A DNA stretch of 64,000 bases, from positions 124,001 to 188,000 of the IMG/VR virus record IMGVR_UViG_3300032242_002454; one strand, 5' to 3'. The notes below the pieces were generated by a model. The model was not told the origin of the DNA, did not search any database, and was given only the letters and a program-made list of their open reading frames with translations. Numbering within the stretch: position 1 is the stretch's first letter; each line of letters starts with the position of its first letter. Positions 3,493-47,352 of the stretch are shown piece after piece. The position numbers were made by a program, and so were the translations under genes.

Positions 3493-4477
3493 TGGAAATT
3501 CAAAATAAGAAAGAGATTACTCTAAGTGTTAAAGATGTTCAAGATATTATTTTTGATCATTTAACAAGACAATATAGGCTTGATGGGGATTTTAATTTTG
3601 ACTTTGTTGTTATCAATAAACCATACCCATGCGGAATTCACGATGCTTGTGATCGTTATGAATTTGATGGGGTAAAGATTGTGGTGACTCATGAGTAAAT
3701 TTCTAGACAATCAAAAAGCACAAGATATGACTGTGACTCTAATACTTTTTGGAGTAGTGATAGTTCTCACAGCTTTTTCAATGTTTATTCTTAATCCTAT
3801 TCATAAAAAGAATATAGAAAAGCTAAAAAACAAACCAATAGACAGACAGAAGATTATTATTGACAATATTGCTGGTACTGTAGAAAGTATTCATCCTTGG
3901 GGACGCACAGAAGTTGTTCCTATAAATGGGATAGAATTAGAATACTTTGAATATTGTGATCAGTGGGTTATGTACGGAGATGTAGTTCAACCAATTGGTC
4001 GTAAAGGTTATTTTATGCCGGTCATGAGAGGCAGACTAAATCTTGACGTTAAAGATTTTACCCAAACATGGATTGAATATGGTGGTTACGAAACTGGTTC
4101 CTTAGAAAAACCAGAAACCTATGAGGACTTTAGATTAGCCCACATAAAAGTAAAACTAGGGGAAATTACCAAAGTAGAATATACTCACTACAGACTATTA
4201 CCAAATAATATTTGGAGTATAATCTCTTCGTGGGAGTCAAAATCTAATGAAACCAATTGAAGTTGGATTTGATGGAAGTTTTGATATAACTTCTGGTCAT
4301 GTAGGGCCACTAAAGATAAGACTAACTAGAAGTGGTTCAAATCCTAAAGATTGGATAAACCCACCTATTGACAACACATTCATCTGGTTGTATACTGACA
4401 AGGACAACCCAGAGTTGTTATACAAGAATAAAGATGGTAAACTTTATAGCGTCAATTTTGAACCTTTTGGGGAATAA
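3492..4477 (+). other. three hypothetical ORFs (3492..3698; 3691..4260 with an N-terminal TM helix; 4247..4477)
   Basis: Coupled ORFs; hydrophobic stretch VTLILFGVVIVLTAFSMFIL. Confidence 0.7.
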
Positions 4478-13150: not shown

Positions 13151-14071
13151 ATGAGATTCGGACTGTGTTGCATTTCTCTCAAACTTAAAGATCAAGGTTT
13201 TGGTCATCAGACTATGACCTTTAAGCGTTTTAATTCTTTGCCAAGAGAAGAAGCATTAGAAACTCTTGGAGATAGAATTCTAAATAATCTAGTTACAACA
13301 AACAAGACTATTCAGTTTTGTGCAGAAAATAATTATACCTATCGCGTTAGTAGCGATATTTTTCCACTTATTACTTATGATGAAGCAAATGTTGAATTGG
13401 AAGATTTACCTAATCATGATGCTATCCAAGATGAGTTCGACAATATCTCAAACACTATTGCCCATACTAATGTTCGGGTTTCTGCTCATCCTAGTGAATT
13501 TAATAGTTTGGCAAGTCTCAACGAAAAAGTTGTCGAAAAAACAATCTCAGAACTCAACTTCTACAGTAGTTTCTTTGACAGAATAGGGTTGCCAGCAGAC
13601 CGTAGATCACCCATGAATTTTCATGTTCATAACAATAACGGAACCAGAGAAGAAATTGCCCACAGATTTTATAACAACTTCAAAAAACTGGACAAAAATT
13701 GTCAGGATCGTATAACAATAGAGAACGATGATAAACTAAATTGTTGGAGTGTTCAAGAATTGGTAGATATTTTCCATCCAATTACACGCATCCCGATCTG
13801 TTTCGATTATCTGCATCATAAATGTCACCCCAATAATTTGTCGGAAAGTGATGCTATTAATATGTGCTGGGAAACTTGGCAAACAAAACCTCTTTTTCAT
13901 TATAGCGAATCATCACTAGGAACTAATCCTCGTAAACACGCAGATTATGCAGTAAAACCCTTGAATACTTATGGACTAGAGTTTGATCTTGATATGGAAT
14001 TGAAAGCTAAAGACTTGGCTATTGCAGAGTACAGTGAACTTTTAACCAGAGAGATTTCAAATGTCAGCTAA
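13151..14071 (+). CDS. uvsE: UV DNA damage repair endonuclease
   Basis: RFGLCCI, YRVSSDIFP, SAHPSEF, IENDD, FDYLHH, HYSES, RKHADY, MELKAKD. Confidence 0.95.
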   Translation: MRFGLCCISLKLKDQGFGHQTMTFKRFNSLPREEALETLGDRILNNLVTTNKTIQFCAENNYTYRVSSDIFPLITYDEANVELEDLPNHDAIQDEFDNISNTIAHTNVRVSAHPSEFNSLASLNEKVVEKTISELNFYSSFFDRIGLPADRRSPMNFHVHNNNGTREEIAHRFYNNFKKLDKNCQDRITIENDDKLNCWSVQELVDIFHPITRIPICFDYLHHKCHPNNLSESDAINMCWETWQTKPLFHYSESSLGTNPRKHADYAVKPLNTYGLEFDLDMELKAKDLAIAEYSELLTREISNVS

Positions 14072-17751: not shown

Positions 17752-17824
17752 GGGGCGTTCGTCTAATGGTCTAAGACGCTAGTCTTATTAACTAGCTAAG
17801 GGAGTTCGATTCTCTCACGCCCTA
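17752..17824 (+). tRNA. tRNA-Ile (anticodon UAU), atypical U37
   Basis: Acceptor GGGGCGT/ACGCCCT+A; D stem GTCT/AGAC; anticodon stem CTAGT/ACTAG with loop CT-TAT-TA; T arm GGGAG-TTCGATT-CTCTC. Confidence 0.8.
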
Positions 17825-17864
17825 CTTTTGCTTTAAGTATTCGATTCTTGATTGAAAGCAAGTA

Positions 17865-19540: not shown

Positions 19541-19958
19541 AAAAATTTGCATTTACTGTGGTAAAAGGAAAAATGCCAAGTCTTTTGCTAGACATATTGG
19601 ACATAAAGATAATCTGGACAGTAGATGCAGAAAGTGCGTTAAACAACATACTAAGATTAGAAATAAACTAAGGAAAAAGGCTCCTCAAAAGCCAGATGGT
19701 TGTGAGTGTTGTTTTTGTAGTCCAGATAAATGGCACCTAGATCATGACCATGTTTATCATACCTTTAGGGGATGGTTATGTGAAACTTGTAATATAGGGA
19801 TAGGAAAATTAGGAGATAATTTAGAAGGTATTGTTGCTGCTTTGAAATATTTATCAGTAAGAAGTAAGGTTGAAGATCAAGCTGTGCTAAATCACATTAT
19901 TCAAGGCGTGGTTTTTTCTTTAAACCATTTGCTAGAGAAAAGACGAAATGATGCTTGA
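19533..19958 (+). CDS. recombination endonuclease VII-like protein
   Basis: CECC...HLDHDH...RGWLCETCNIGIGKLGDN. Confidence 0.88.
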   Translation: MSRKICIYCGKRKNAKSFARHIGHKDNLDSRCRKCVKQHTKIRNKLRKKAPQKPDGCECCFCSPDKWHLDHDHVYHTFRGWLCETCNIGIGKLGDNLEGIVAALKYLSVRSKVEDQAVLNHIIQGVVFSLNHLLEKRRNDA

Positions 19959-20008
19959 CAACAGCATTACCGTATGCTATACTTGGGAAAACACAGGAGA
20001 AATTGGAA

Positions 20009-21307
20009 ATGTCATTTGAGCATCTTAATGGTTTTGTTCGTGATCTGAAAGCAACTAGTAGTACACTTGATAAAGTTGGAATTATTGAGGATTATACCTC
20101 TTCCAATCAGGCTGGAGCAGATTTTATCAAAAAGATTTTGCTCTATACTTATCATCCTCTTTGGCAGTATAATGTGACCAGCGATAATCTCAAAAAGAAA
20201 TCTTCACTCAGAGGACAATCTTTTAAGACTGTTTTTGATTTGCTAGATTCTTTGAAGAACAGAGAAATCACAGGTCACGATGCTATTGGAGCAGTTAATA
20301 CTTTTATTGACAATAATGGATACGAAGAACTCATCCACTGTATTATTGATAAGGATTTGAAAACCCGTGCTGGAGATAAGTTAATCAATAAGGCTATTCC
20401 AGATCACATTCCAACATTTAGCGTTGCATTAGCGGACAAGTATGTTCCTAAAATTGTAGACTGGAAGGATGGATGGTATGTTAGCAGGAAGATCGACGGT
20501 GCTAGATGTATTGCTATTGTTGACAGTAATGGTAATACTACCTTTTATTCCCGCACGGGAAAAAACTTTGATACTCTTGACGTTGTTAGCGGTGGGATTA
20601 AAGCTTTGGGACTTACTAATGTAATTCTTGATGGAGAACTTTGTCTTGTTGATGAAGATGGTAATGAGGATTTTCAAGGAGTAATGAAAGAACTTCGCAA
20701 GAAGGATCATACTATTCCTAATCCTTCATATAAGATTTTTGATATGATTACTCATGATGAATTTTATAGTCAGAAGGGAGAACATAATAGACCCTTTGGT
20801 ATCAGACTCAAGAATCTTACAGAAGTTATGAAAAAGAATGAATGTCCATGCCTAACACTATTGGATCAGTCCTTGATTAAGGACGAAAACCATTTTCAAG
20901 AATTTGTCAAAGAATCTACTCAGAATGGTTGGGAGGGACTTATGCTTCGTGCAGATACTCCTTATAAGGGTAAGCGATCAAAAGACCTTCTCAAATATAA
21001 ATCATTCTTTGATGACGAATATGAAGTTCTAGATACTGAAATGGGGCCGTTCCGCTATGTTAAAGATGGTGCAGAGTGCGAGGAGATTATGTTGAGTTGT
21101 GTTATGATTCAACATAAGGGTCATACTGTCAGGGTTGGTTCTGGTTTTAGTATTGATCAAAGACAAGAGTTTTATAAGAATCCTAAGAAGATTTTGGGCA
21201 AAATAATTACTGTCCAATACTTTGAAGAAACAGAAAATGAAAAGGGTGGTATTAGCCTAAGATTTCCGACATTTAAAATTTTGCATGGGGATGAGAGGGA
21301 TATTTGA
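20009..21307 (+). CDS. ATP-dependent DNA ligase
   Basis: SRKIDGARC (KxDG), LDGEL, EGLML, DLLKYK, SLRFP; AGGAG RBS favours ATG 20009. Confidence 0.95.
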   Translation: MSFEHLNGFVRDLKATSSTLDKVGIIEDYTSSNQAGADFIKKILLYTYHPLWQYNVTSDNLKKKSSLRGQSFKTVFDLLDSLKNREITGHDAIGAVNTFIDNNGYEELIHCIIDKDLKTRAGDKLINKAIPDHIPTFSVALADKYVPKIVDWKDGWYVSRKIDGARCIAIVDSNGNTTFYSRTGKNFDTLDVVSGGIKALGLTNVILDGELCLVDEDGNEDFQGVMKELRKKDHTIPNPSYKIFDMITHDEFYSQKGEHNRPFGIRLKNLTEVMKKNECPCLTLLDQSLIKDENHFQEFVKESTQNGWEGLMLRADTPYKGKRSKDLLKYKSFFDDEYEVLDTEMGPFRYVKDGAECEEIMLSCVMIQHKGHTVRVGSGFSIDQRQEFYKNPKKILGKIITVQYFEETENEKGGISLRFPTFKILHGDERDI

Positions 21308-24822: not shown

Positions 24823-24895
24823 GGCCCAGTAACCCAATGGCAGAGGTAGCGGACTTAAAATCCGTCAAGTATCAGTTCGAGTCTGATCTGGGCCA
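24823..24895 (+). tRNA. tRNA-Leu (anticodon UAA), short variable arm
   Basis: Acceptor GGCCCAG/CTGGGCC+A; anticodon stem GCGGA/TCCGT with loop CT-TAA-AA; T arm ATCAG-TTCGAGT-CTGAT. Confidence 0.92.
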
Positions 24896-24972
24896 CTTTA
24901 ATGTGGTGTAAAAAGTAGACAAAATATATCTATCTTGGTGTATGTAATTGTGGCACATACAAGGAGATAGTT

Positions 24973-39216: not shown

Positions 39217-39957
39217 ATGAAAAGCTTAATTTTTCTTCTGGGTATCTTTTTATTTTTTTCAAATTCTCTTGCTGGGACAATTGATCCCAATGTTGAAGAT
39301 TCTAAGTATGTGGAGTATGGAAACAAATTTAAACATACTGTCAGGATAATTTGTTATGACGATAATGGACAGGCGGCAGGTTCTGCTGTGATAGTTGATA
39401 ATAATTGGATAATAACAGCAGCTCATGTTGTAAAAAATATGAAAGATCATCACATTATTGTTGATGGTAAACAATATAATTTAGATTTTATTGTGTGTCA
39501 TGAAAAATATAGCGATAATGTTTTTGGATATTATGATATTGCAATAGGTCATATAGCTGAACAGGTGGATATGTCTCCTTATCCAGATCTTTATGAAGAA
39601 GAGGACGAAGTAGGAAAAGTGGCAGCTATTGCTGGTGTTGGGCTTACTGGAAATTTTAATACTGGAGTGACCATTTCTGATGGTAAAAAAAGAGCTGGTT
39701 CAAACTATATTAAAAAAATAGAAAGAGGAACACTAGTATGCGATGCTTCCAGGCCCAGTCAAAAAATAACAGAACTTGAGTATCTTATTTGTAGTGGAGA
39801 TAGTGGTGGAGGTCTTTTTATAGATGGAAAACTTGCTGGAATAAATTCTTCTGTATTGGGGTATGATGGTAAGCCAGACTCAACGTATGGAGATGAAAGT
39901 TGTCATACAAGAATTAGTATGTATATTCCATGGATTAGAAACATTATTAAGAAATAA
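39217..39957 (+). CDS. secreted trypsin-like serine protease (S1)
   Basis: Signal peptide; ITAAHV, DIAI, GDSGGG triad. Confidence 0.93.
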   Translation: MKSLIFLLGIFLFFSNSLAGTIDPNVEDSKYVEYGNKFKHTVRIICYDDNGQAAGSAVIVDNNWIITAAHVVKNMKDHHIIVDGKQYNLDFIVCHEKYSDNVFGYYDIAIGHIAEQVDMSPYPDLYEEEDEVGKVAAIAGVGLTGNFNTGVTISDGKKRAGSNYIKKIERGTLVCDASRPSQKITELEYLICSGDSGGGLFIDGKLAGINSSVLGYDGKPDSTYGDESCHTRISMYIPWIRNIIKK

Positions 39958-39959
39958 TT

Positions 39960-40889
39960 ATGTTAAAAAAGAAACAATGCAAGCTTTTACCGCACACAAG
40001 AAAAGATATTTATGGTTTATCGGTAGGATCTAGTCAGTTCCATAGCTGGCCCATTGATAAATTCTCAGTTCCTCAACAATGGAGACATTCTCAAGGAGAA
40101 GGTGTAACTGTAGCAGTAATAGATACTGGATGCGATTTAAATCACGAAGATATTAAAGACAATATTGTAGATGGTTATAATTTCATAAATCCAGATCAAC
40201 CCCCACAAGATGATAATGGTCACGGAACTCACGTTGCTGGTACAATAGCTGCCGTGAACAATGGTGTAGGCATGGTAGGAGTCGCTCCACAAGCCAAGAT
40301 CATGCCTATTAAAGCACTTGGAGCCGATGGGTCAGGAATTAATAAAAACGTCGCTGAAGCGATTGTGTGGGCTGCTGACCACGGAGCAGATTTGATAACT
40401 ATGTCTCTAGGTTCAGAATATCCATCCATTCAGATAGAAAAAGCTATAGAGTATGCTAAATATAAAAATGTAATTATATTTTGTGCGGCAGGCAATAGTG
40501 GAATAGAGTCTGGCATCCAATATCCTGCTAAGTATAATAATACTATTAGTGTTGGAGCAATAGATGAAAAATTAAATATTTGTACATTTAGTTGTTGTGG
40601 AGAAGAGCTTGACTTTTTAGCTCCGGGAGCAGATATTATTAGTGCTGTACCTGGAAATGCTTATGCTTCTATGTCTGGAACAAGCATGGCAACACCATTT
40701 GCCGTAGGTTGTGCTGCGTTGTTTCTATCTTTTGCCAAAAAAATTAAGTTCGCTATGCTAGAGAATATGCTTAAATCATCAGACGACTATGTGTCTGTTT
40801 TTGCTAAAAAAGCCATGAAGCTACATCAGCAAAATTATACAGGAATAAAGAAATATGAAGGCTATGGTATCATTAGACCCATACTCTAA
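39960..40889 (+). CDS. subtilisin-like serine protease (S8)
   Basis: VAVIDTG, NGHGTHVAG, AAGN, GTSMATP. Confidence 0.96.
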   Translation: MLKKKQCKLLPHTRKDIYGLSVGSSQFHSWPIDKFSVPQQWRHSQGEGVTVAVIDTGCDLNHEDIKDNIVDGYNFINPDQPPQDDNGHGTHVAGTIAAVNNGVGMVGVAPQAKIMPIKALGADGSGINKNVAEAIVWAADHGADLITMSLGSEYPSIQIEKAIEYAKYKNVIIFCAAGNSGIESGIQYPAKYNNTISVGAIDEKLNICTFSCCGEELDFLAPGADIISAVPGNAYASMSGTSMATPFAVGCAALFLSFAKKIKFAMLENMLKSSDDYVSVFAKKAMKLHQQNYTGIKKYEGYGIIRPIL

Positions 40890-40965
40890 CTTAATCACCC
40901 TCTGCATAAGATATAGTTTTTTCTGGGTGTTGTGTCAAGCAGAAAAACTTTTTATCCGTAACCAC

Positions 40966-40994
40966 TTGACTTGTTTCACGTTGTCTCGTATCAT
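40966..40994 (+). promoter_or_regulatory. probable sigma70-type promoter
   Basis: TTGACT-17-TATCAT upstream of 41020. Confidence 0.55.
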
Positions 40995-41019
40995 AAACTC
41001 TGAAAGGTGAGCAAAAGAA

Positions 41020-41651
41020 ATGAACGATTTTGATTTTGAAAAGCGAAAAGTAAATAGACGACAGAATATTGAGAAGAAAACTACTGATAAAAAATCTGAT
41101 CAATATCAAAATAGAGATTTGAATAAGGTTAAAAAGGAATTCAAGAAAGCCAAAGAAGAAATCAGACAGGATGAACTTTGGGATTATTGGGAAGATGAAA
41201 TATCTTGAAGAAATAAAACCTGGTCAATTATTTTCATATAAAGAGAATAGGTTTATTTTAACCTCTGACTTTACAAAGTCCAATAAGAGATCTTGTATAA
41301 GTTTGAATAATGGTTTTGTTAGCTGGTTGCCCGATAATACTGTGGTAGATCTTTTAGATCTCTACTATAGAGATCACGATGGAAATATTGTCGCGGTAAA
41401 GGAATATAAAAATGAGTATACTGAAAAAACTGAAAAATTTCATTAAGGCTTTATGGTTCCATATCGGTGCTGGATTACCAAAGTCATCTCAAGAAGAAAT
41501 CAATAAAAGATTTGCCATTTGCCAAAAGTGTGATTTGTTTGATAATAAGTCTAGTCAATGTCTAGCTTGTGGTTGCAATCTGAGTCAGAAAAGTATTTTT
41601 TTAAATAAGCTAGCATGGGCAGACCAGAAATGTCCAATTAATAAATGGTAA
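41020..41651 (+). other. three small ORFs (41020..41208; ~41197..41446; 41412..41651 Cys-rich zinc-binding)
   Basis: CQKC...CLACGC...CP in the last. Confidence 0.7.
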
Positions 41652-41655
41652 AATA

Positions 41656-42204
41656 ATGACAATCAAAACACACATTAATACCACATCTAATTTATATACC
41701 TTAGTTAAAAGACATAACCTCTTTGATGTTATCGACGAGAGAATTATGGCTGGGGTTAATGGTGGTACAGTTATTGTTCCACACGTTTGTAATAATGTTA
41801 ATGCTTTTGGCGCTGGGTTTGCAGGTCAAGTAGCAGATATTTATCCACAAGTAAAAGCTAACTTTCATATGCTTGGTCAGCAAGCTAAATTAGGACACAC
41901 CCAGTTCATTAATGTTAAATCAGACCAGAAATATCGTCATAGCATCATCTTTGGAAATATGATCGCTCAAAACAAACTGATCAATACAAATAATAAAAGA
42001 CCATTAAATTATGGAGCTTTAGTTTATTGTATGAATCAAGTCAGATCTTATGTAAAAGAATTGCAGAAAAATTCAGAAAACTCTAGAGTAGAAATACATG
42101 CTCCTAAATTTGGGAGTGGTTTAGCTGGGGGTAACTGGAATTTTATTGAAGAACTAATTAGAGATATTTGGTACGATTGCGAGGTCTTTGTTTATTCAAA
42201 GTGA
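41656..42204 (+). CDS. macro-domain (ADP-ribose-binding/processing) protein
   Basis: HVCNNVNAFGAGFA, NMIAQ, PKFGSGLAGGNW. Confidence 0.88.
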   Translation: MTIKTHINTTSNLYTLVKRHNLFDVIDERIMAGVNGGTVIVPHVCNNVNAFGAGFAGQVADIYPQVKANFHMLGQQAKLGHTQFINVKSDQKYRHSIIFGNMIAQNKLINTNNKRPLNYGALVYCMNQVRSYVKELQKNSENSRVEIHAPKFGSGLAGGNWNFIEELIRDIWYDCEVFVYSK

Positions 42205-42363
42205 AACTATGGACAATAATCAATATTTGTATTTTTTATATCTAGCATGTGGAATCTATGGATTATGTCAGGGTCTATTTACCCCTGACCGTTCTTCATC
42301 AGGTTCTAAACCAGATAATATACTTGAGTACTTATTTCCACCCGGTTCAAAAAAGTAATATTT

Positions 42364-42903
42364 ATGTCTTCTTTTGGCAGATTAAATGGACAAAGAGTTT
42401 ATCTGGCTGGTGCTATGGATAGAGTACCAGATAGAGGTGCAACTTGGAGAGATAATATAACTCCATTTTTACAAAATCTAGGAATAGAAGTCTTTAATCC
42501 TATTAGTAAGCCATCTAATATAGGATTAGAAGATTGTGATGTTCATCAAATTAAGACTAAACTAAAAGAAAAAGAAAATTATGATGAACTATCATCTATG
42601 ATGAAAACTATTAGGGCAGTTGATTTACGTCTAGTAGACATCAGTGATTTTTTAGTAGTTAATATGAATTTAGATATTCATCCTTGTGGAACATATGAAG
42701 AAATATTCTGGGCTAATAGACAAAAGAAACCCATACTTATTCATATGGAACAGGGGAAAAAATATTCTCCTGACTGGTTGTTTGGAACCATTCCACATCA
42801 AATGATTTTCTCTGCATGGGATGAAATAAAATCTTATCTATTGCATATTAATGTATCAGAAAATATAGATACTCATAAAAGATGGTATTTCTTTAACACA
42901 TAG
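42364..42903 (+). CDS. nucleoside 2-deoxyribosyltransferase-like protein
   Basis: VYLAGAM, VFNP, DLRLVDISD, GTYEEIFWA. Confidence 0.8.
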   Translation: MSSFGRLNGQRVYLAGAMDRVPDRGATWRDNITPFLQNLGIEVFNPISKPSNIGLEDCDVHQIKTKLKEKENYDELSSMMKTIRAVDLRLVDISDFLVVNMNLDIHPCGTYEEIFWANRQKKPILIHMEQGKKYSPDWLFGTIPHQMIFSAWDEIKSYLLHINVSENIDTHKRWYFFNT

Positions 42904-42910
42904 GCTAACA

Positions 42911-43117
42911 ATGCCAAAATATTATGTGCAAACTGGACAAATGAAATATGTTGTTGATAAGCCAAACTCTGATGAGGCAATAATATGTACGTTGAAACAC
43001 TTTAAAGGTAAAGGACTAGTTACTCACTCAAAAATATGCATTAGTGAATTTGGGTGGGGAAAAAGATTAAAGTGTTATGATACCGATGAATTTTTGAAAG
43101 AAATCAATAATGAATAA
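42911..43117 (+). CDS. hypothetical protein
   Basis: ORF track. Confidence 0.6.
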   Translation: MPKYYVQTGQMKYVVDKPNSDEAIICTLKHFKGKGLVTHSKICISEFGWGKRLKCYDTDEFLKEINNE

Positions 43118-43574
43118 ACATACTATTAGACCAGATGATCCAGAAAAACTAAACTACTTACCTCCTACTAAAATTATAGTCGGAGATTCGCTTGTTCATG
43201 GTAGGGGAGTTTTCGCTACCAGCAAAATCTATAAAGGAGAAATAATTGAACGATGTCCTTTGATAGAAATGGAATATAGATCTAAATACCAATTAGATCC
43301 TATTATTTTTGGTTATATGTATGCACAACCACCATGTAATTGTGAAGATTGTGAAAAACATGGATTCGTTTTCCACATGGTTCTTGGTTATGGTATGATA
43401 TATAATCATCAAGACCAACCTAATGCCTTGTGGAAATTTAATTATTCTCAATTACTATCAGATGTTATTGCTACAAAAGATATTAATAAAGATGATGAAA
43501 TTTTTGTAAGTTATGGTAATTGTTATTTTGATTCAGAAGGTATAGAGACAGGAAAAACTAAGGTTATCAAATGA
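43110..43574 (+). CDS. SET-domain protein (copy 1)
   Basis: HGRGVFA, YNHQDQPN, EIFVSY. Confidence 0.9.
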   Translation: MNKHTIRPDDPEKLNYLPPTKIIVGDSLVHGRGVFATSKIYKGEIIERCPLIEMEYRSKYQLDPIIFGYMYAQPPCNCEDCEKHGFVFHMVLGYGMIYNHQDQPNALWKFNYSQLLSDVIATKDINKDDEIFVSYGNCYFDSEGIETGKTKVIK

Positions 43575-44005
43575 GTATAGATTTTTTACAAGATTTTCCT
43601 ATTAAAGTAGGACTATCTGCCATAGAGGGTAGAGGTATCTTTTCTACTAAAGAAATTAAAGAAGGAGATCTTATAGAAAGATGCCCTATGGTTCCTTTGG
43701 CTTTTAGATCTAGATATCATTCAGATCCTCAAATATATAAGTATTTGTATTCTCAACCAACTTGTCCATGTAATGAATGCAAGGTTCATGGTTTTAAATT
43801 TTATATGGTATTAGGATATGGAATGCTTTATAATCATCAAGATGATCCTAACACAGAATGGCAATTTGATTTTCCTAATCTAGTAGCAGACATTATGGCT
43901 ATAAAAAATATTCCAGCAGGAAATGAAATTTTTGTAGATTATGGCACCAAATATTTTAATGATCAACCAAAAATAGAAAATAAAGATAATGCAAAAAATA
44001 ATTAA
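43571..44005 (+). CDS. SET-domain protein (copy 2)
   Basis: EGRGIFS, YNHQDDPN, EIFVDY. Confidence 0.9.
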   Translation: MSIDFLQDFPIKVGLSAIEGRGIFSTKEIKEGDLIERCPMVPLAFRSRYHSDPQIYKYLYSQPTCPCNECKVHGFKFYMVLGYGMLYNHQDDPNTEWQFDFPNLVADIMAIKNIPAGNEIFVDYGTKYFNDQPKIENKDNAKNN

Positions 44006-45113
44006 TGAAATTAAGCTTGATTTTGATGATGTTCTTATCAAACCCAAAAGATCAGCTTTAAATAGTAGATCTGAGGTAACTTTAGTTAGAGAATTTAATT
44101 TTTCTAATTCAACAAGAAAATTGTCTTGTGTGCCAATTATGGTGGCTAATATGGATACTACTGGAACTTTTAGTATGACTGATCCAGTCTGTTCAGCACA
44201 GAGCATAGTGTGTTTACACAAGCATTATTCTATAGAACAGTTGACATCTTTTTATTCTACTGATACTAATATAGATAAAGATCTTGTTTTTTATTCTACG
44301 GGAACGTCTGCAAAAGATCTTGAAAAACTAAAAGAGGTTTTTAACTCATTACTTTATATAGGCAAAAAAGTTCCTAATGTTTGTATTGATGTTGCAAATG
44401 GTTATAGTGAAAAATTTGTAAAAATAACCAGTCATATTCGTGGACTATATCCAGATATTGTAATTATGGCTGGCAATGTAGTAACCCCAGAAATGGTTGA
44501 AGAATTAATACTCCATGGCAGAGTGGATATTGTTAAAGTAGGAATAGGATCAGGCTCAGTCTGCACTACTAGACTAAAAACTGGAATAGGCTATCCTCAA
44601 TTGGCAGCAGTAATGGAATGTACCGATGCTGCTCATGGATTAGGTGGTCATATTTGTTCTGATGGTGGATGCAAGATAGTTGGAGATGTTTGTAAAGCAT
44701 TTGGTGCTAATGCAGATTTTGTAATGCTAGGTAGTATGTTTGCTGGTACTGATGAATGTGAAGGAGAATGGGAATATGAGTTTAAATGTAAAAGAGCTGG
44801 CTTAACATCTGAATTTTGGCAACCATTTAACCCCGGTTATGAAACAGAAAAGAAAAAAACTAAACTTAAGTTCTATGGTATGAGTTCTAAAAACGCTATG
44901 GATAAATATCATAATGGGATTGCAAACTATAGAACTAGCGAGGGAAAATGCGTTACTATTCCTTACAAAGACAAAGCAGAAGTAATCCTACAAGATATTC
45001 TTGGTGGTATTAGAAGCGCTTGCACTTACGTAGGAGCTTCTAAAATTAAGGATTTTGGCAAAAAAACTACTTTTATTCAGGTTAACAATACTCATAATAG
45101 GATTTTTGAATGA
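43989..45113 (+). CDS. guaC: GMP reductase
   Basis: LDFDDVLIKP, ANMD, DVANG, AGNV, GIGSGSVCTTR, SDGG, GSMFAG, FYGMSS. Confidence 0.93.
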   Translation: MQKIINEIKLDFDDVLIKPKRSALNSRSEVTLVREFNFSNSTRKLSCVPIMVANMDTTGTFSMTDPVCSAQSIVCLHKHYSIEQLTSFYSTDTNIDKDLVFYSTGTSAKDLEKLKEVFNSLLYIGKKVPNVCIDVANGYSEKFVKITSHIRGLYPDIVIMAGNVVTPEMVEELILHGRVDIVKVGIGSGSVCTTRLKTGIGYPQLAAVMECTDAAHGLGGHICSDGGCKIVGDVCKAFGANADFVMLGSMFAGTDECEGEWEYEFKCKRAGLTSEFWQPFNPGYETEKKKTKLKFYGMSSKNAMDKYHNGIANYRTSEGKCVTIPYKDKAEVILQDILGGIRSACTYVGASKIKDFGKKTTFIQVNNTHNRIFE

Positions 45114-46174
45114 ATATTAATTTATATGCTCCAATAGGAGTAACAGGCTATGGTAATGTGGCCTTTAATTTACTGAAACAGCTTGTTAAACAAGATCATA
45201 ATGTTTGCTTAACTCCAATGGGCAATCCAAAAGTAGAATCAGAGGAAGATTTAAATTTAATCCACCACGCTGTTGGTTTGGGCTCAAGTATTGATTATAA
45301 TGCTGCTTGTATTAAAATTTGGCATCAATTCGATTTACTAACTAGATCTGGTAATGGAAAATATTTAGCATATCCTTTTTTTGAAATAGACACTTTTAAT
45401 ACTCTAGAAAAGCATCATTTAGGATTTCCAGATCAATTAATAGCTAGTAGTGAATGGGCTAAGAATGTTTTATTAGATAATGGCATTAAACAAGAAATTG
45501 GTATTGTACATTTGGGTGTTGATAATACTATTTTTTATCCTAGAGAATTGACAACAAAAAGACCTCAAAATTTTATTTTTATCACAATAGGAAAGTGGGA
45601 AGTTCGCAAGTCGCACGATGTTATTATAGAATGTTTTAATAAAGCATTTTCTAATCAAGATAATGTTGAGCTTTGGATGGTCACACATAATCCATTTTTG
45701 AATGAAACACAAGAAAAAGAATGGTTATCATTAGTTAATATCTCAAATCTTAAAAACAAAATTAAAGTTTTCCCAAGATTACCTAGTCAAGAAAATTTAG
45801 CAGAAGTTTTGTCCTACGCTGACTGTGGATTATATGTTTCCAGAGCGGAAGGATGGAATTTAGAAATACTTGAAACTATGGCAATGAATAAACCAGTTAT
45901 AGTAACAAATTATTCTGCCCATACAGAATATTGTAATTCAAAAAATTCTTATTTGGTCGATATATCAGATAAAGAATTAGCTAATGATGGTAAATGGTTT
46001 CATGGAGAGGGTAATTGGGCTAAGATTGGCGAAAAAGAAAAAGATCAAATTATTGAACACATGAGATATGTGTATTCCAATAAAATTAACACCAATCCAG
46101 AAGGTATACAAACAGCACAAAATTTTACTTGGGAAAATTCGGCCAAGCAATTAGTTAGGTGTATAGAAAAATAA
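45110..46174 (+). CDS. glycosyltransferase, GT-B fold (GT4-like)
   Basis: GKWEVRK, SRAEGWNLEILETMAMNKPVI. Confidence 0.88.
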   Translation: MNINLYAPIGVTGYGNVAFNLLKQLVKQDHNVCLTPMGNPKVESEEDLNLIHHAVGLGSSIDYNAACIKIWHQFDLLTRSGNGKYLAYPFFEIDTFNTLEKHHLGFPDQLIASSEWAKNVLLDNGIKQEIGIVHLGVDNTIFYPRELTTKRPQNFIFITIGKWEVRKSHDVIIECFNKAFSNQDNVELWMVTHNPFLNETQEKEWLSLVNISNLKNKIKVFPRLPSQENLAEVLSYADCGLYVSRAEGWNLEILETMAMNKPVIVTNYSAHTEYCNSKNSYLVDISDKELANDGKWFHGEGNWAKIGEKEKDQIIEHMRYVYSNKINTNPEGIQTAQNFTWENSAKQLVRCIEK

Positions 46175-46185
46175 GGAGAAATACT

Positions 46186-46752
46186 ATGCCAATTCCTGAT
46201 CCACATCAAAATGAAGATAAAGATAAATTTGTATCTCGCTGTATGTCTAGTGAGATAATGAAAAAAGAGTATCCTGATAGCAAGCAAAGAGTTGCTATTT
46301 GTTTATCTCAAACTAAAAAAGATAAACATGCTAAAAATCAATTACTAGAAGATGTTCAAGACAATTTAGCTTATCTAAGAGCTGAATATGATAATGAATG
46401 GGATGAATTTACTCAAGAAATTGTTCCAGAAATAATCTATGAAGATAATGATGAACAGATCATAGCTAAAGAAAATAATAAAAACAATAAAAACAATAAA
46501 AAAGTAACATTGAATAAACCTTTTCGCACCCCAAGTGGTCCCAAAAAGTTTTCTGTGTATGTTAAAAATGAAAAAGGTAATGTTGTAAAAGTAAACTTCG
46601 GTGATCCAAATATGGAAATTAAAAGAGACGATCCAGAAAGAAGGAAGTCTTATAGAGCAAGGCATAACTGTGATAATCCTGGACCAAAATGGAAAGCAGA
46701 ATATTGGTCTTGTAAAATGTGGTCAAAAACTAATGTCTCAGATTTAACATAA
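46186..46752 (+). CDS. hypothetical protein with conserved phage modules
   Basis: PIPDPHQNEDKDKFVSRCM and KVNFGDPNM...RRKSYRARHNC...YWSC modules. Confidence 0.7.
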   Translation: MPIPDPHQNEDKDKFVSRCMSSEIMKKEYPDSKQRVAICLSQTKKDKHAKNQLLEDVQDNLAYLRAEYDNEWDEFTQEIVPEIIYEDNDEQIIAKENNKNNKNNKKVTLNKPFRTPSGPKKFSVYVKNEKGNVVKVNFGDPNMEIKRDDPERRKSYRARHNCDNPGPKWKAEYWSCKMWSKTNVSDLT

Positions 46753-46761
46753 GGAATCAAT

Positions 46762-47352
46762 ATGTCAAAAGATCATCATAGTATTTCAGAACTATTAAAA
46801 GAACAAGAATCTAAGTTATCCATCAAAGAAAAGGCAAAAATTATGGCAGATCATATAGAATTATTATCCGATAAAGATGCACAAAATTATATCAATGATA
46901 ATGTAGTAGATCTACTAAAAAAGTCTTTAAATATTCATTGGCAACAGACTACCGCTTTATCCGCACAAGCTGTTCATCTTGAAAGATGGGGATATGCTAA
47001 ATTAGCCGAAGTTGTTAAAGCAGATGCTTTACAAGAACATCAACACGCCATGATTAATCTTACAAGATTAGAATTTTTTGATGCAGACTATCAACCGCTC
47101 ATTGTTCAACCAAAGACATGGAAAAGACACGATATGATAGATATGATAAAATATAATCTAGAGTCTGTCCAAGAGGCATCAAAAGCTGAACGAGCAACTA
47201 TTTCTGCTGCTAGAGCAGTTGGTGATGAAATTACTGCTAATATAATGATACCTCTACTTCAAGGCAGCGAAGATGGCATTATACTATATAGTGGTTTCTT
47301 AAAACTTATTGAACAAATGGGGCTAGACAACTTCCTCTCTATTCAAGCATAA
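46762..47352 (+). CDS. bacterioferritin-like protein, degenerate ferroxidase centre
   Basis: HLERWGYAKLA...QEHQHA...RLEFFD; LIEQMGLDNFL C-terminus matches Bfr. Confidence 0.8.
   Translation: MSKDHHSISELLKEQESKLSIKEKAKIMADHIELLSDKDAQNYINDNVVDLLKKSLNIHWQQTTALSAQAVHLERWGYAKLAEVVKADALQEHQHAMINLTRLEFFDADYQPLIVQPKTWKRHDMIDMIKYNLESVQEASKAERATISAARAVGDEITANIMIPLLQGSEDGIILYSGFLKLIEQMGLDNFLSIQA

Follow-up and report, generated by a model that had tools for sequence, protein, structure and literature searches.

Tandem SET-domain proteins with a Cys3-His insert, predicted to be lysine methyltransferases, in a large tailed phage

A 64,000-nucleotide stretch of viral DNA (hereafter the window; bases 124001-188000 of the IMG/VR record IMGVR_UViG_3300032242_002454) carries, in its interval 41656-44005, two adjacent genes for SET-domain proteins, annotated here as SET1 and SET2. 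As predicted from fold and motifs, SET1 and SET2 are minimal, stand-alone SET lysine methyltransferases resembling vSET of a chlorella virus, and both contain a Cys3-His insert that is probably a structural zinc knuckle. SET lysine methylation is a central mechanism of eukaryotic chromatin and is exploited by giant viruses and intracellular bacteria. In phages, lysine methylation by SET enzymes is essentially unexplored. What is new here is a minimal viral type of SET methyltransferase in a phage, duplicated and bearing a Cys3-His insert.

SET1 and SET2 are minimal SET proteins with the motifs of the family

The interval contains five open reading frames (ORFs) on the + strand, encoding proteins of 182, 179, 68, 154 and 144 amino acids (Table 1). 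An earlier reading of the DNA (the original prediction) described the last two as adjacent paralogous SET proteins. This description holds: both proteins score above the gathering score of PF00856 (22.4), and they are 48% identical over an ungapped alignment of 130 residues (E = 2e-52). The PF00856 match spans residues 31-136 of SET1 and 20-125 of SET2. A six-frame search of the whole genome for SET domains returned exactly these two, and a Pfam scan of SET1 and SET2 detected no further domain and neither pre-SET nor post-SET modules.

The GxG, NH and catalytic Tyr motifs attributed to the pair are likewise present: G31-R-G33, N99-H100 and Y135 in SET1, and G20-R-G22, N88-H89 and Y124 in SET2. 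Conservation was computed over 68-122 homologues covering both paralogue types. Across these, the SET1 motifs G31-R-G33, Y98-N99-H100-x3-P-N105 and E130...Y135-G136, together with their SET2 equivalents, were invariant or at least 90% conserved. The invariant and near-invariant positions include G33, E47-R48-C49-P50, Y60, H84-G85, G93-Y94-G95, Y98-N99-H100, E130, Y135-G136 and Y139-F140.

Consistent with the sequence assignment, an AlphaFold2 (AF2) model of SET1 had the SET fold, with a predicted local distance difference test (pLDDT) value of 80.8 and a predicted template modelling score (pTM) of 0.73. Foldseek returned 351 PDB matches to this model at E ≤ 1e-3, and each of those listed is a SET-domain methyltransferase. 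The best matches were 4rz0, 3kma (vSET) and 5h6z, in the same order as obtained by sequence, followed by SETD8 and the MLL family.

Among characterized proteins, vSET (A612L of Paramecium bursaria chlorella virus 1; 1n3j/3kma) is similar in being virus-encoded and minimal, with no pre-SET or post-SET module. It shares with the phage SETs the motif layout GxG; NH..PN; E-I-x-[IV]-S-Y-G-x-x-Y-[FW], the C-terminal motif being E-I-F-V-S-Y-G-x-x-Y-F in the phage proteins and E-I-T-I-S-Y-G-D-D-Y-W in vSET. The two are ∼27% identical and match with E = 2.8e-8 by sequence (1n3j) and E = 2.2e-9 by Foldseek (TM score of 0.86 on the target). By contrast, vSET has 119 amino acids and no Cys3-His insert, belongs to a eukaryotic giant virus and methylates histone H3K27, whereas the phage SETs are two tandem paralogues of a tailed phage whose probable host is a bacterium without histone H3. 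The best PDB match was PFL0690c of Plasmodium falciparum (4rz0; E = 1.6e-10 by sequence, 7e-10 by Foldseek, 35% identity over ∼120 columns), a eukaryotic ‘putative histone methyltransferase’ that is likewise a minimal SET, comparable in length; where the phage SETs have CxCxxCxxH, it has an insertion of another kind. Set7 of Schizosaccharomyces pombe (5h6z; E = 1.5e-5, Foldseek 3e-8) is a further small stand-alone SET with the same fold, but is a eukaryotic histone methyltransferase without a zinc insert and is only 20-22% identical to the phage SET.

The residue two positions before the catalytic Tyr is at the Phe/Tyr switch of SET enzymes, where an aliphatic residue suggests di- or tri-methylation. 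The switch position is Val in the phage SETs and Ile in vSET, and the product is therefore likely, by analogy, to be di- or tri-methyl-lysine.

The Cys3-His insert is specific to a phage clade and resembles a metal site

A CxCxxCxxH motif had been noted in both copies as a probable zinc site. The motif is indeed present in both and behaves like a metal site in that its cysteines were lost together in several lineages. It lies in an insert of ∼9 residues relative to vSET, the cell-encoded relatives and the more distant viral SETs, and corresponds to a gap in the vSET alignment. The insert was missing from every cell-encoded relative and from every more distant viral SET examined. CxCxxCxxH occurred in 104 of 120 homologues; the other 16 lacked all three cysteines and retained His84, which is invariant among the homologues.

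According to the tree and the alignment, all three cysteines are absent together from SET1 of four loci (L107, L108, L110 and L111) and from the SETs of L124, L141 and L146. The exceptions to this all-or-none pattern are a partial loss in L132 and a respaced variant in L134. Joint loss of the cysteines is expected of a cooperative metal site. In the four loci with a Cys-less SET1 (∼3974-4462 in each locus), the adjacent SET2 keeps its cysteines. These SET1 copies constitute natural ‘zinc-less’ variants and form one subclade of the tandem-bearing phages.

In known SET enzymes, the I-SET region forms one wall of the peptide groove. In the SET1 model, the CxC portion of the insert lies in a loop, and C81 and H84 are on a short helix, residues 79-84, between the two halves of the SET fold. 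Overall, these sequence comparisons indicate that the insert is specific to the phage clade, with several independent losses, and that it is a probable structural zinc knuckle in the I-SET region. Because the insert has been lost in some lineages, the site appears not to be needed for catalysis.

SET1 is a derived duplicate kept under purifying selection

Of 75 viral loci with a SET ORF, ten carry the tandem pair and 65 a single copy. By maximum likelihood, the insert-bearing phage SETs and those derived from insert-bearing forms make up one clade (49 rows, support 96/86). Within it, the SET1 orthologues form a subclade of 13 rows (99/97), and the SET2 orthologues cluster, at lower support (83/77), together with single-copy SETs from phages of the same gene order. 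This clustering with single-copy SETs of collinear phages identifies SET2 as the ancestral-type copy by phylogeny, and SET1 as the derived duplicate directly upstream.

Pairwise ratios of non-synonymous to synonymous substitution rates (dN/dS) were 0.06-0.22 for SET1 and 0.04-0.35 for SET2; most dS values were saturated, and the least saturated pair gave 0.059 and 0.092. The sequence data are those of an ancient duplication of which both copies have been kept under purifying selection.

In loci L104-L106, a SET1-type gene stands alone at this position. One of these loci belongs to a complete genome of 186.5 kb (G001), which encodes a second SET protein 37 kb from the SET1-type gene (127 amino acids; 1978-2361 of locus L176, - strand). 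This second protein is unrelated to the first, carries the canonical motifs NHS..PN and ELTIDY and has no insert. SET genes thus entered this phage group more than once.

SET genes are nearly absent from cultured phages and common in metagenomes

The original prediction considered SET enzymes to be rarely reported in phages. This is correct for sequenced and cultured phages and for PHROGs, from which such genes are nearly absent, but not for metagenomes and IMG/VR, in which they are common. A tblastn search of 50,697 GenBank phage records yielded only two 735-kb megaphages at E ≤ 1e-3 and a third at E = 0.02, all uncultured. The same collection of phages contained no close relative of the locus at the DNA level. 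PHROGs contained no real SET family, the best match being an unannotated family at E = 1e-3. By contrast, 330 metagenomic proteins matched at E ≤ 1e-3, many of them from contigs of 150-230 kb, and at least 76 IMG/VR contigs carried relatives, 75 of which gave a SET ORF; these contigs were retrieved with two narrow peptide patterns and their count is a lower bound. Atlas clusters had 54-165 members, mostly from tailed phages. The best fold matches in BFVD were UniProt entries named ‘SET domain containing protein [uncultured Caudovirales phage]’, which ranked above giant-virus SETs; the top match, A0A6J5L8Y2, was 36% identical (8e-13). The megaphage SETs (for example, in LR756501) are 28-34% identical to those of the window. 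Unlike the SETs of the window, the automatically annotated proteins of phages and megaphages (A0A6J5L8Y2, LR756501 and ORF62 of Stenotrophomonas phage Ps15) are single-copy, without the insert (L009) and in other gene contexts.

Cellular relatives were sought in one genome per species of 185,579 prokaryotes. The nearest, 27-40% identical and without the insert, came from SAR116/Puniceispirillales, Actinomycetota, Solirubrobacteraceae, Myxococcus/Corallococcus and some members of the candidate phyla radiation (CPR). On this distribution, the phage SETs do not belong to a common family with a known housekeeping substrate, a finding that would have spoken against the original prediction. Full-text literature searches turned up no work on the function of a phage SET enzyme, and the only direct mention was the uncharacterised ‘SET domain protein’ of phage Ps15 (PMC9025141). 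A survey of jumbo phages treats Macro and not SET (PMC7824862).

The genome is that of a tailed phage with a probable bacterial host

The source record is 204,625 bp long, has a 123-bp terminal repeat and is rated complete. Genes for the large terminase subunit, for tail fibres and for head decoration mark it as a tailed phage, as does its DNA polymerase, which is encoded by two separate ORFs. The G+C content is ∼33%. Almost every gene of the window is on the + strand, and the structural genes are on the opposite strand at genome positions 17-99 kb, which places the SETs in the replication/accessory arm. Metagenome runs containing parts of the locus were labelled freshwater, lake-water or wastewater.

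The RecA encoded by the genome is of bacterial type, with RecA_C; a Toprim primase and a ribonucleotide reductase are encoded as well, and motifs resembling the Shine-Dalgarno (SD) sequence precede 44% of ORFs against a background of 14%. For these reasons, the host is probably a bacterium. An archaeal host was considered in view of the Volactin match of an actin homologue and the absence of SLT, Phage_lysozyme and Amidase_2 families, none of which had a match anywhere in the whole genome. We judged it less likely, since the RecA with RecA_C, the primase and the SD-like motifs oppose it. A giant-virus origin was excluded by the terminase, the tail fibres and the phage-type split DNA polymerase. 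A search of the genome for capsid proteins of nucleocytoplasmic large DNA viruses (NCLDV) gave zero matches; the same search was also silent in every control genome.

SET1 and SET2 may act as a pair or independently

The stop codon of SET1 and the start codon of SET2 overlap in the sequence ATGA (43571-43574), and AAGG lies 8 nt ahead of the SET2 start. From this overlap, translational coupling of SET1 and SET2 is predicted as the simplest reading; it is compatible with a stoichiometric pair and does not constitute proof of one. Similar overlaps flank the pair: the stop of the 68-residue ORF (orf68) and the start of SET1 share ATGAATAA (43110-43117), and the end of SET2 overlaps the start of the GMP reductase gene by 17 nt (43989-44005). 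A promoter and terminator scan of 40800-46800 gave site counts equal to the shuffled expectation and was uninformative.

The formation of a SET1/SET2 heterodimer, raised in the original prediction as a point to check, received a mixed answer. The complex prediction gave a score of 0.56 (runs of 0.55, 0.57 and 0.56), which is above the mark and was rated ‘weak support’; the best control scored 0.00. The runs agreed in at least 84% of contacts, and the partner pLDDT was at least 67. Of 78 solved complexes, 51 attain this mark, compared with 2 of 108 mismatched pairs. However, the score falls within the unreliable band at or below 0.60, which holds only 5 of the 78 solved complexes and all 4 of the mismatches that passed (of 180), so that passes in this band are more often wrong than right. 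Moreover, solved vSET dimers exist, and the score may therefore reflect likeness rather than binding. The genomes also count against an obligate pair: G001 has a SET1-type gene and no SET2 orthologue, and complete phages of 149.5 and 199.8 kb have a single SET. Heterodimer formation is therefore no general requirement. We put a SET1/SET2 complex at roughly even odds.

The corresponding alternative is that SET1 and SET2 are independent, each a monomer or homodimer that does not bind the other and that acts on different substrates, on different lysines or to different methylation states. We give this alternative substantial weight, if somewhat less than an even chance. In addition to the genomes with a lone SET and the weakly supported complex, it is favoured by the modest identity of the two paralogues and by those tandem-bearing phages in which SET1 lacks the cysteines that SET2 keeps. 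It is opposed by the ATGA coupling and the strict side-by-side retention of the genes in ten loci, which fit a stoichiometric pair, by the complex score relative to its controls, and by the description of vSET, the closest solved relative here, as dimeric (Manzur 2003, as listed in PMC10117894).

Proposed mechanism and substrates

Our overall explanation, which we consider somewhat likelier to be right than wrong, is that SET1 and SET2 are active, S-adenosylmethionine (SAM)-dependent, vSET-like lysine methyltransferases that contain a zinc knuckle, act as dimers and modify abundant non-histone targets in the infected bacterium. Each SET would bind SAM on one face and receive the substrate lysine through a channel closed by Y135, Y139 and F140 (Y124 and the residues following it in SET2). 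The Cys3-His knuckle would bind zinc, stiffen the I-SET wall of the peptide groove and tune the choice of substrate, while being dispensable. Dimers would form as in vSET, possibly between SET1 and SET2. Because the host is probably a bacterium, histone H3 is an unlikely substrate; methylation would instead fall on abundant non-histone proteins. Of the candidates, the host's nucleoid-associated proteins, which are small, basic and DNA-binding, rank highest in our view; translation factors and ribosomal proteins follow, and phage proteins come last. The first rank is given by analogy to vSET on H3K27 and to two prokaryotic SETs that act on DNA-associated proteins, Go1-SET of Methanosarcina on MC1-alpha and cpnSET of Chlamydia on Hc1 (PMC10117894). 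The last two are small, cell-encoded enzymes that serve as precedents for SET methylation of chromatin proteins other than histones in prokaryotes, and are likened to the phage SETs by function. The targets named in the original prediction (nucleoid, ribosomal, defence or phage proteins) and a role of the macro domain against DarT are speculative.

A more specific version of this explanation is that a SET1/SET2 heterodimer of a lytic jumbo phage methylates host nucleoid-associated proteins to shut down or remodel the chromosome, with the knuckle recognising the bacterial DNA-binding protein. This version is improbable as a whole. If true, it would be the phage counterpart of the silencing of host chromatin by chlorella viruses.

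Several observations weigh against the overall explanation. In the SET1 model, the C-terminal residues 138-151, which should close the lysine channel, have pLDDT values below 50. The di- or tri-methyl state of the product depends on the switch rule. The chromosomal contexts of the nearest cellular relatives (SAR116, Solirubrobacteraceae and Myxococcus) were uninformative and assigned no substrate; in SAR116, the SET neighbourhoods consisted of ordinary, variable metabolic genes and offered no substrate clue. No RNA runs holding the SET locus were found. Finally, no HU-type protein encoded by the phage was found in the genome, and a phage-encoded HU was accordingly dropped as a built-in substrate of the SETs.

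Two further alternatives concern the substrate and the activity itself. It is conceivable, though unlikely, that the substrates are the phage's own virion, replication or cytoskeletal proteins, methylated for protection from proteolysis or for tuning of assembly. The genes surrounding the SETs encode a secreted trypsin-like protease, a subtilisin and, 5 kb upstream, a volactin-like actin homologue, and the SETs are conserved together with this protease/actin block. Moreover, the eukaryotic SET enzyme SETD3 modifies actin. Nevertheless, synteny covers the whole block and provides no specific link between a SET and a phage protein, distant phages have related SETs in other gene contexts, and SETD3 is a large, unrelated SET subtype, the phage SETs being nearest to vSET-like proteins. 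There is even less to recommend the idea that one or both SETs are pseudoenzymes that bind or sequester SAM or serve as scaffolds, which we regard as very unlikely. Phages deplete SAM by means of other enzymes, which provides a precedent, and the channel-closing segment is poorly modelled. However, all catalytic and cofactor residues are invariant in both paralogue lineages under purifying selection, and a mere SAM binder would not need the catalytic Tyr and the NH motif.

The macro domain is a separate accessory gene

The original prediction placed the SETs in a post-translational modification toolkit with a macro domain encoded upstream. The macro domain itself was confirmed by PDB sequence matches and by fold; its gene ends 906 nt before SET1. 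In phmmer searches of the PDB, the 182-residue protein matched BT1257 (2fg1, 4.4e-13; 2afc, 5.9e-13) and Streptomyces SCO6735, a ‘Macrodomain protein’ (5e3b, 6.6e-11). The AF2 model (pLDDT 83.7) matched BT1257, SCO6735, DarG, ALC1, TARG1 and Poa1p in Foldseek with E values of 6e-13 to 1e-7. According to these sequence and model comparisons, the protein is a member of the ALC1/TARG1/DarG/BT1257-like macro class. It shares its fold with, and is closest in sequence to, BT1257 (2fg1), SCO6735 (5e3b), DarG (5m3e), TARG1 (4j5q) and Poa1p (6lfr). Unlike the members of Pfam Macro, it had no match to the PF01661 model at E ≤ 0.1; the only Pfam match was a weak one to YcbB, under the cut-off. In PHROGs, it belongs to phrog_335, ‘phosphatase’ (E = 1.3e-21).

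The toolkit did not withstand comparison with other phages. The SET genes are part of a 9-kb block with the order trypsin-like protease, subtilisin, orf91, zinc-finger ORF, macro, nucleoside 2-deoxyribosyltransferase (NDT)-like, orf68, SET(s), GMP reductase and glycosyltransferase. The closest relatives have the block in the same order, and ∼30 loci have it slightly altered. Since it is syntenic as a whole within one phage family, the adjacency of macro and SET genes carries no specific signal. None of these neighbours accompanies the insert-bearing SETs of distant phages (for example, L112, L118, L121, L125 and L135-L140) or the related SETs of megaphage loci L009 and L010.

We therefore consider it very improbable, even more so than the pseudoenzyme alternative, that the macro protein and the SETs constitute one modification module in which, for example, the macro protein removes defensive ADP-ribosylation from SET-methylated targets. 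The synteny of macro, NDT-like and SET genes in ∼30 related loci would fit such a module, as would the TARG1/DarG-like class of the protein, which includes enzymes that reverse ADP-ribosylation. Nevertheless, the SETs of distant phages and megaphages have no macro gene within 4-6 kb, and two other genes, the NDT-like gene and orf68, which the original prediction leaves unmentioned, separate macro from SET1 in the window itself. Conversely, 1212 phage records contain macro homologues, under the annotation ‘phosphatase’, and almost none of these records has a SET. In addition, the Macro domains of jumbo phages have already been interpreted as counter-NAD+/ADP-ribose (ADPr) enzymes that degrade ADP-ribose-derived signals or toxins (PMC7824862). 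The macro, NDT-like and GMP reductase genes are separate accessory genes of an early/middle block, outside any SET machine.

Neighbouring genes and other features of the genome

The best-conserved neighbour of the SETs is the NDT-like protein, which is 67-89% identical in ∼30 related phage loci and always directly upstream. GMP reductase is the next most tightly associated. These associations suggest a neighbourhood of accessory nucleotide-metabolism genes, not an operon for protein modification. The small ORF orf68 is 53-67% identical upstream of SET in most close relatives and had no match in Pfam, PHROGs or NCBIfam; its look-alikes in the Atlas are phage hypothetical proteins with scores below 0.9. 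The GMP reductase and glycosyltransferase genes, each of which overlaps its upstream neighbour, are conserved in the relatives, as are the Cys-rich ORF upstream of the macro gene and the adjacent pair of protease genes, the latter together with the block.

Among the control genomes, the Volactin family scored above its cut-off only in Haloferax volcanii. Relatives of the actin homologue, 33-35% identical, occur in the uncultured megaphages LR745208 and LR756511, the former of which also has a weak SET match.

The two DNA polymerase ORFs (phrog_405; genome 3437-5311 and 6201-7832) match the N- and C-terminal halves of the profile, respectively, and a 233-residue ORF (genome 5507-6208) lies between them. 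The split may represent a mobile-element insertion or a genuine split gene. The arm of the genome that contains the SETs also encodes a UvdE UV-damage endonuclease (E = 8e-43) and an ATP-dependent DNA ligase (13151-14071 and 19955-21307, respectively).

Table 1. Positions of the SET genes, their neighbours and other features; coordinates are those of the window unless marked as genome
Feature	Position	Strand	Basis or remark
tRNA-Ile(TAT)	17752-17825	+	SETs' genome arm
tRNA-Leu(TAA)	24823-24896	+	SETs' genome arm
Actin homologue, 333 aa	37882-38883	+	Pfam Volactin end to end, E = 1e-63, 216 bits (cut-off 35)
Trypsin-like serine protease, N-terminal hydrophobic leader	39217-39957	+	Sequence reading and tblastn conservation
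Subtilisin-like protease	39960-40889	+	Sequence reading and tblastn conservation
Cys-rich ORF, 79 aa	41412-41651	+	Weak DUF6171 match; phrog_13558, E = 1e-10; just upstream of macro gene
Macro domain protein, 182 aa	41656-42204	+	Fold and PDB sequence matches
NDT-like protein, 179 aa	42364-42903	+	PF05014, E = 1.3e-5, and PF15891, E = 4.8e-5, both under gathering score
orf68, 68 aa	42911-43117	+	Conserved small ORF; overlaps SET1 start
SET1, 154 aa	43110-43574	+	PF00856, E = 5.9e-13, 49.6 bits
SET1 CxCxxCxxH insert (C76, C78, C81, H84)	43335-43361	+	I-SET region
SET2, 144 aa	43571-44005	+	PF00856, E = 6.8e-13, 49.4 bits
SET2 CxCxxCxxH insert (C65, C67, C70, H73)	43763-43789	+	Translation, aligned with SET1 motif
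GMP reductase	43989-45113	+	NF003470, E = 8e-144; PF00478, E = 4e-60; directly downstream of SET2
Family-4 glycosyltransferase	45110-46174	+	After GMP reductase
Giant ORF, 5022 aa	genome 37321-52389	-	Structural arm, outside window
Giant ORF, 4023 aa	genome 63019-75090	-	Structural arm, outside window
Giant ORF, 2679 aa	genome 17642-25681	-	Structural arm, outside window

Significance

Small proteins (144-154 amino acids) that come as a natural paralogue pair, together with naturally Cys-less variants, offer a convenient system for biochemical and structural studies. The identity of the substrate would distinguish between takeover of the host, protection of the phage's own proteins and counter-defence. 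Throughout a clade of large freshwater phages, one or two SET genes are retained under purifying selection, in at least 76 contigs and hundreds of metagenomic proteins, which argues that these genes have a real role in infection.

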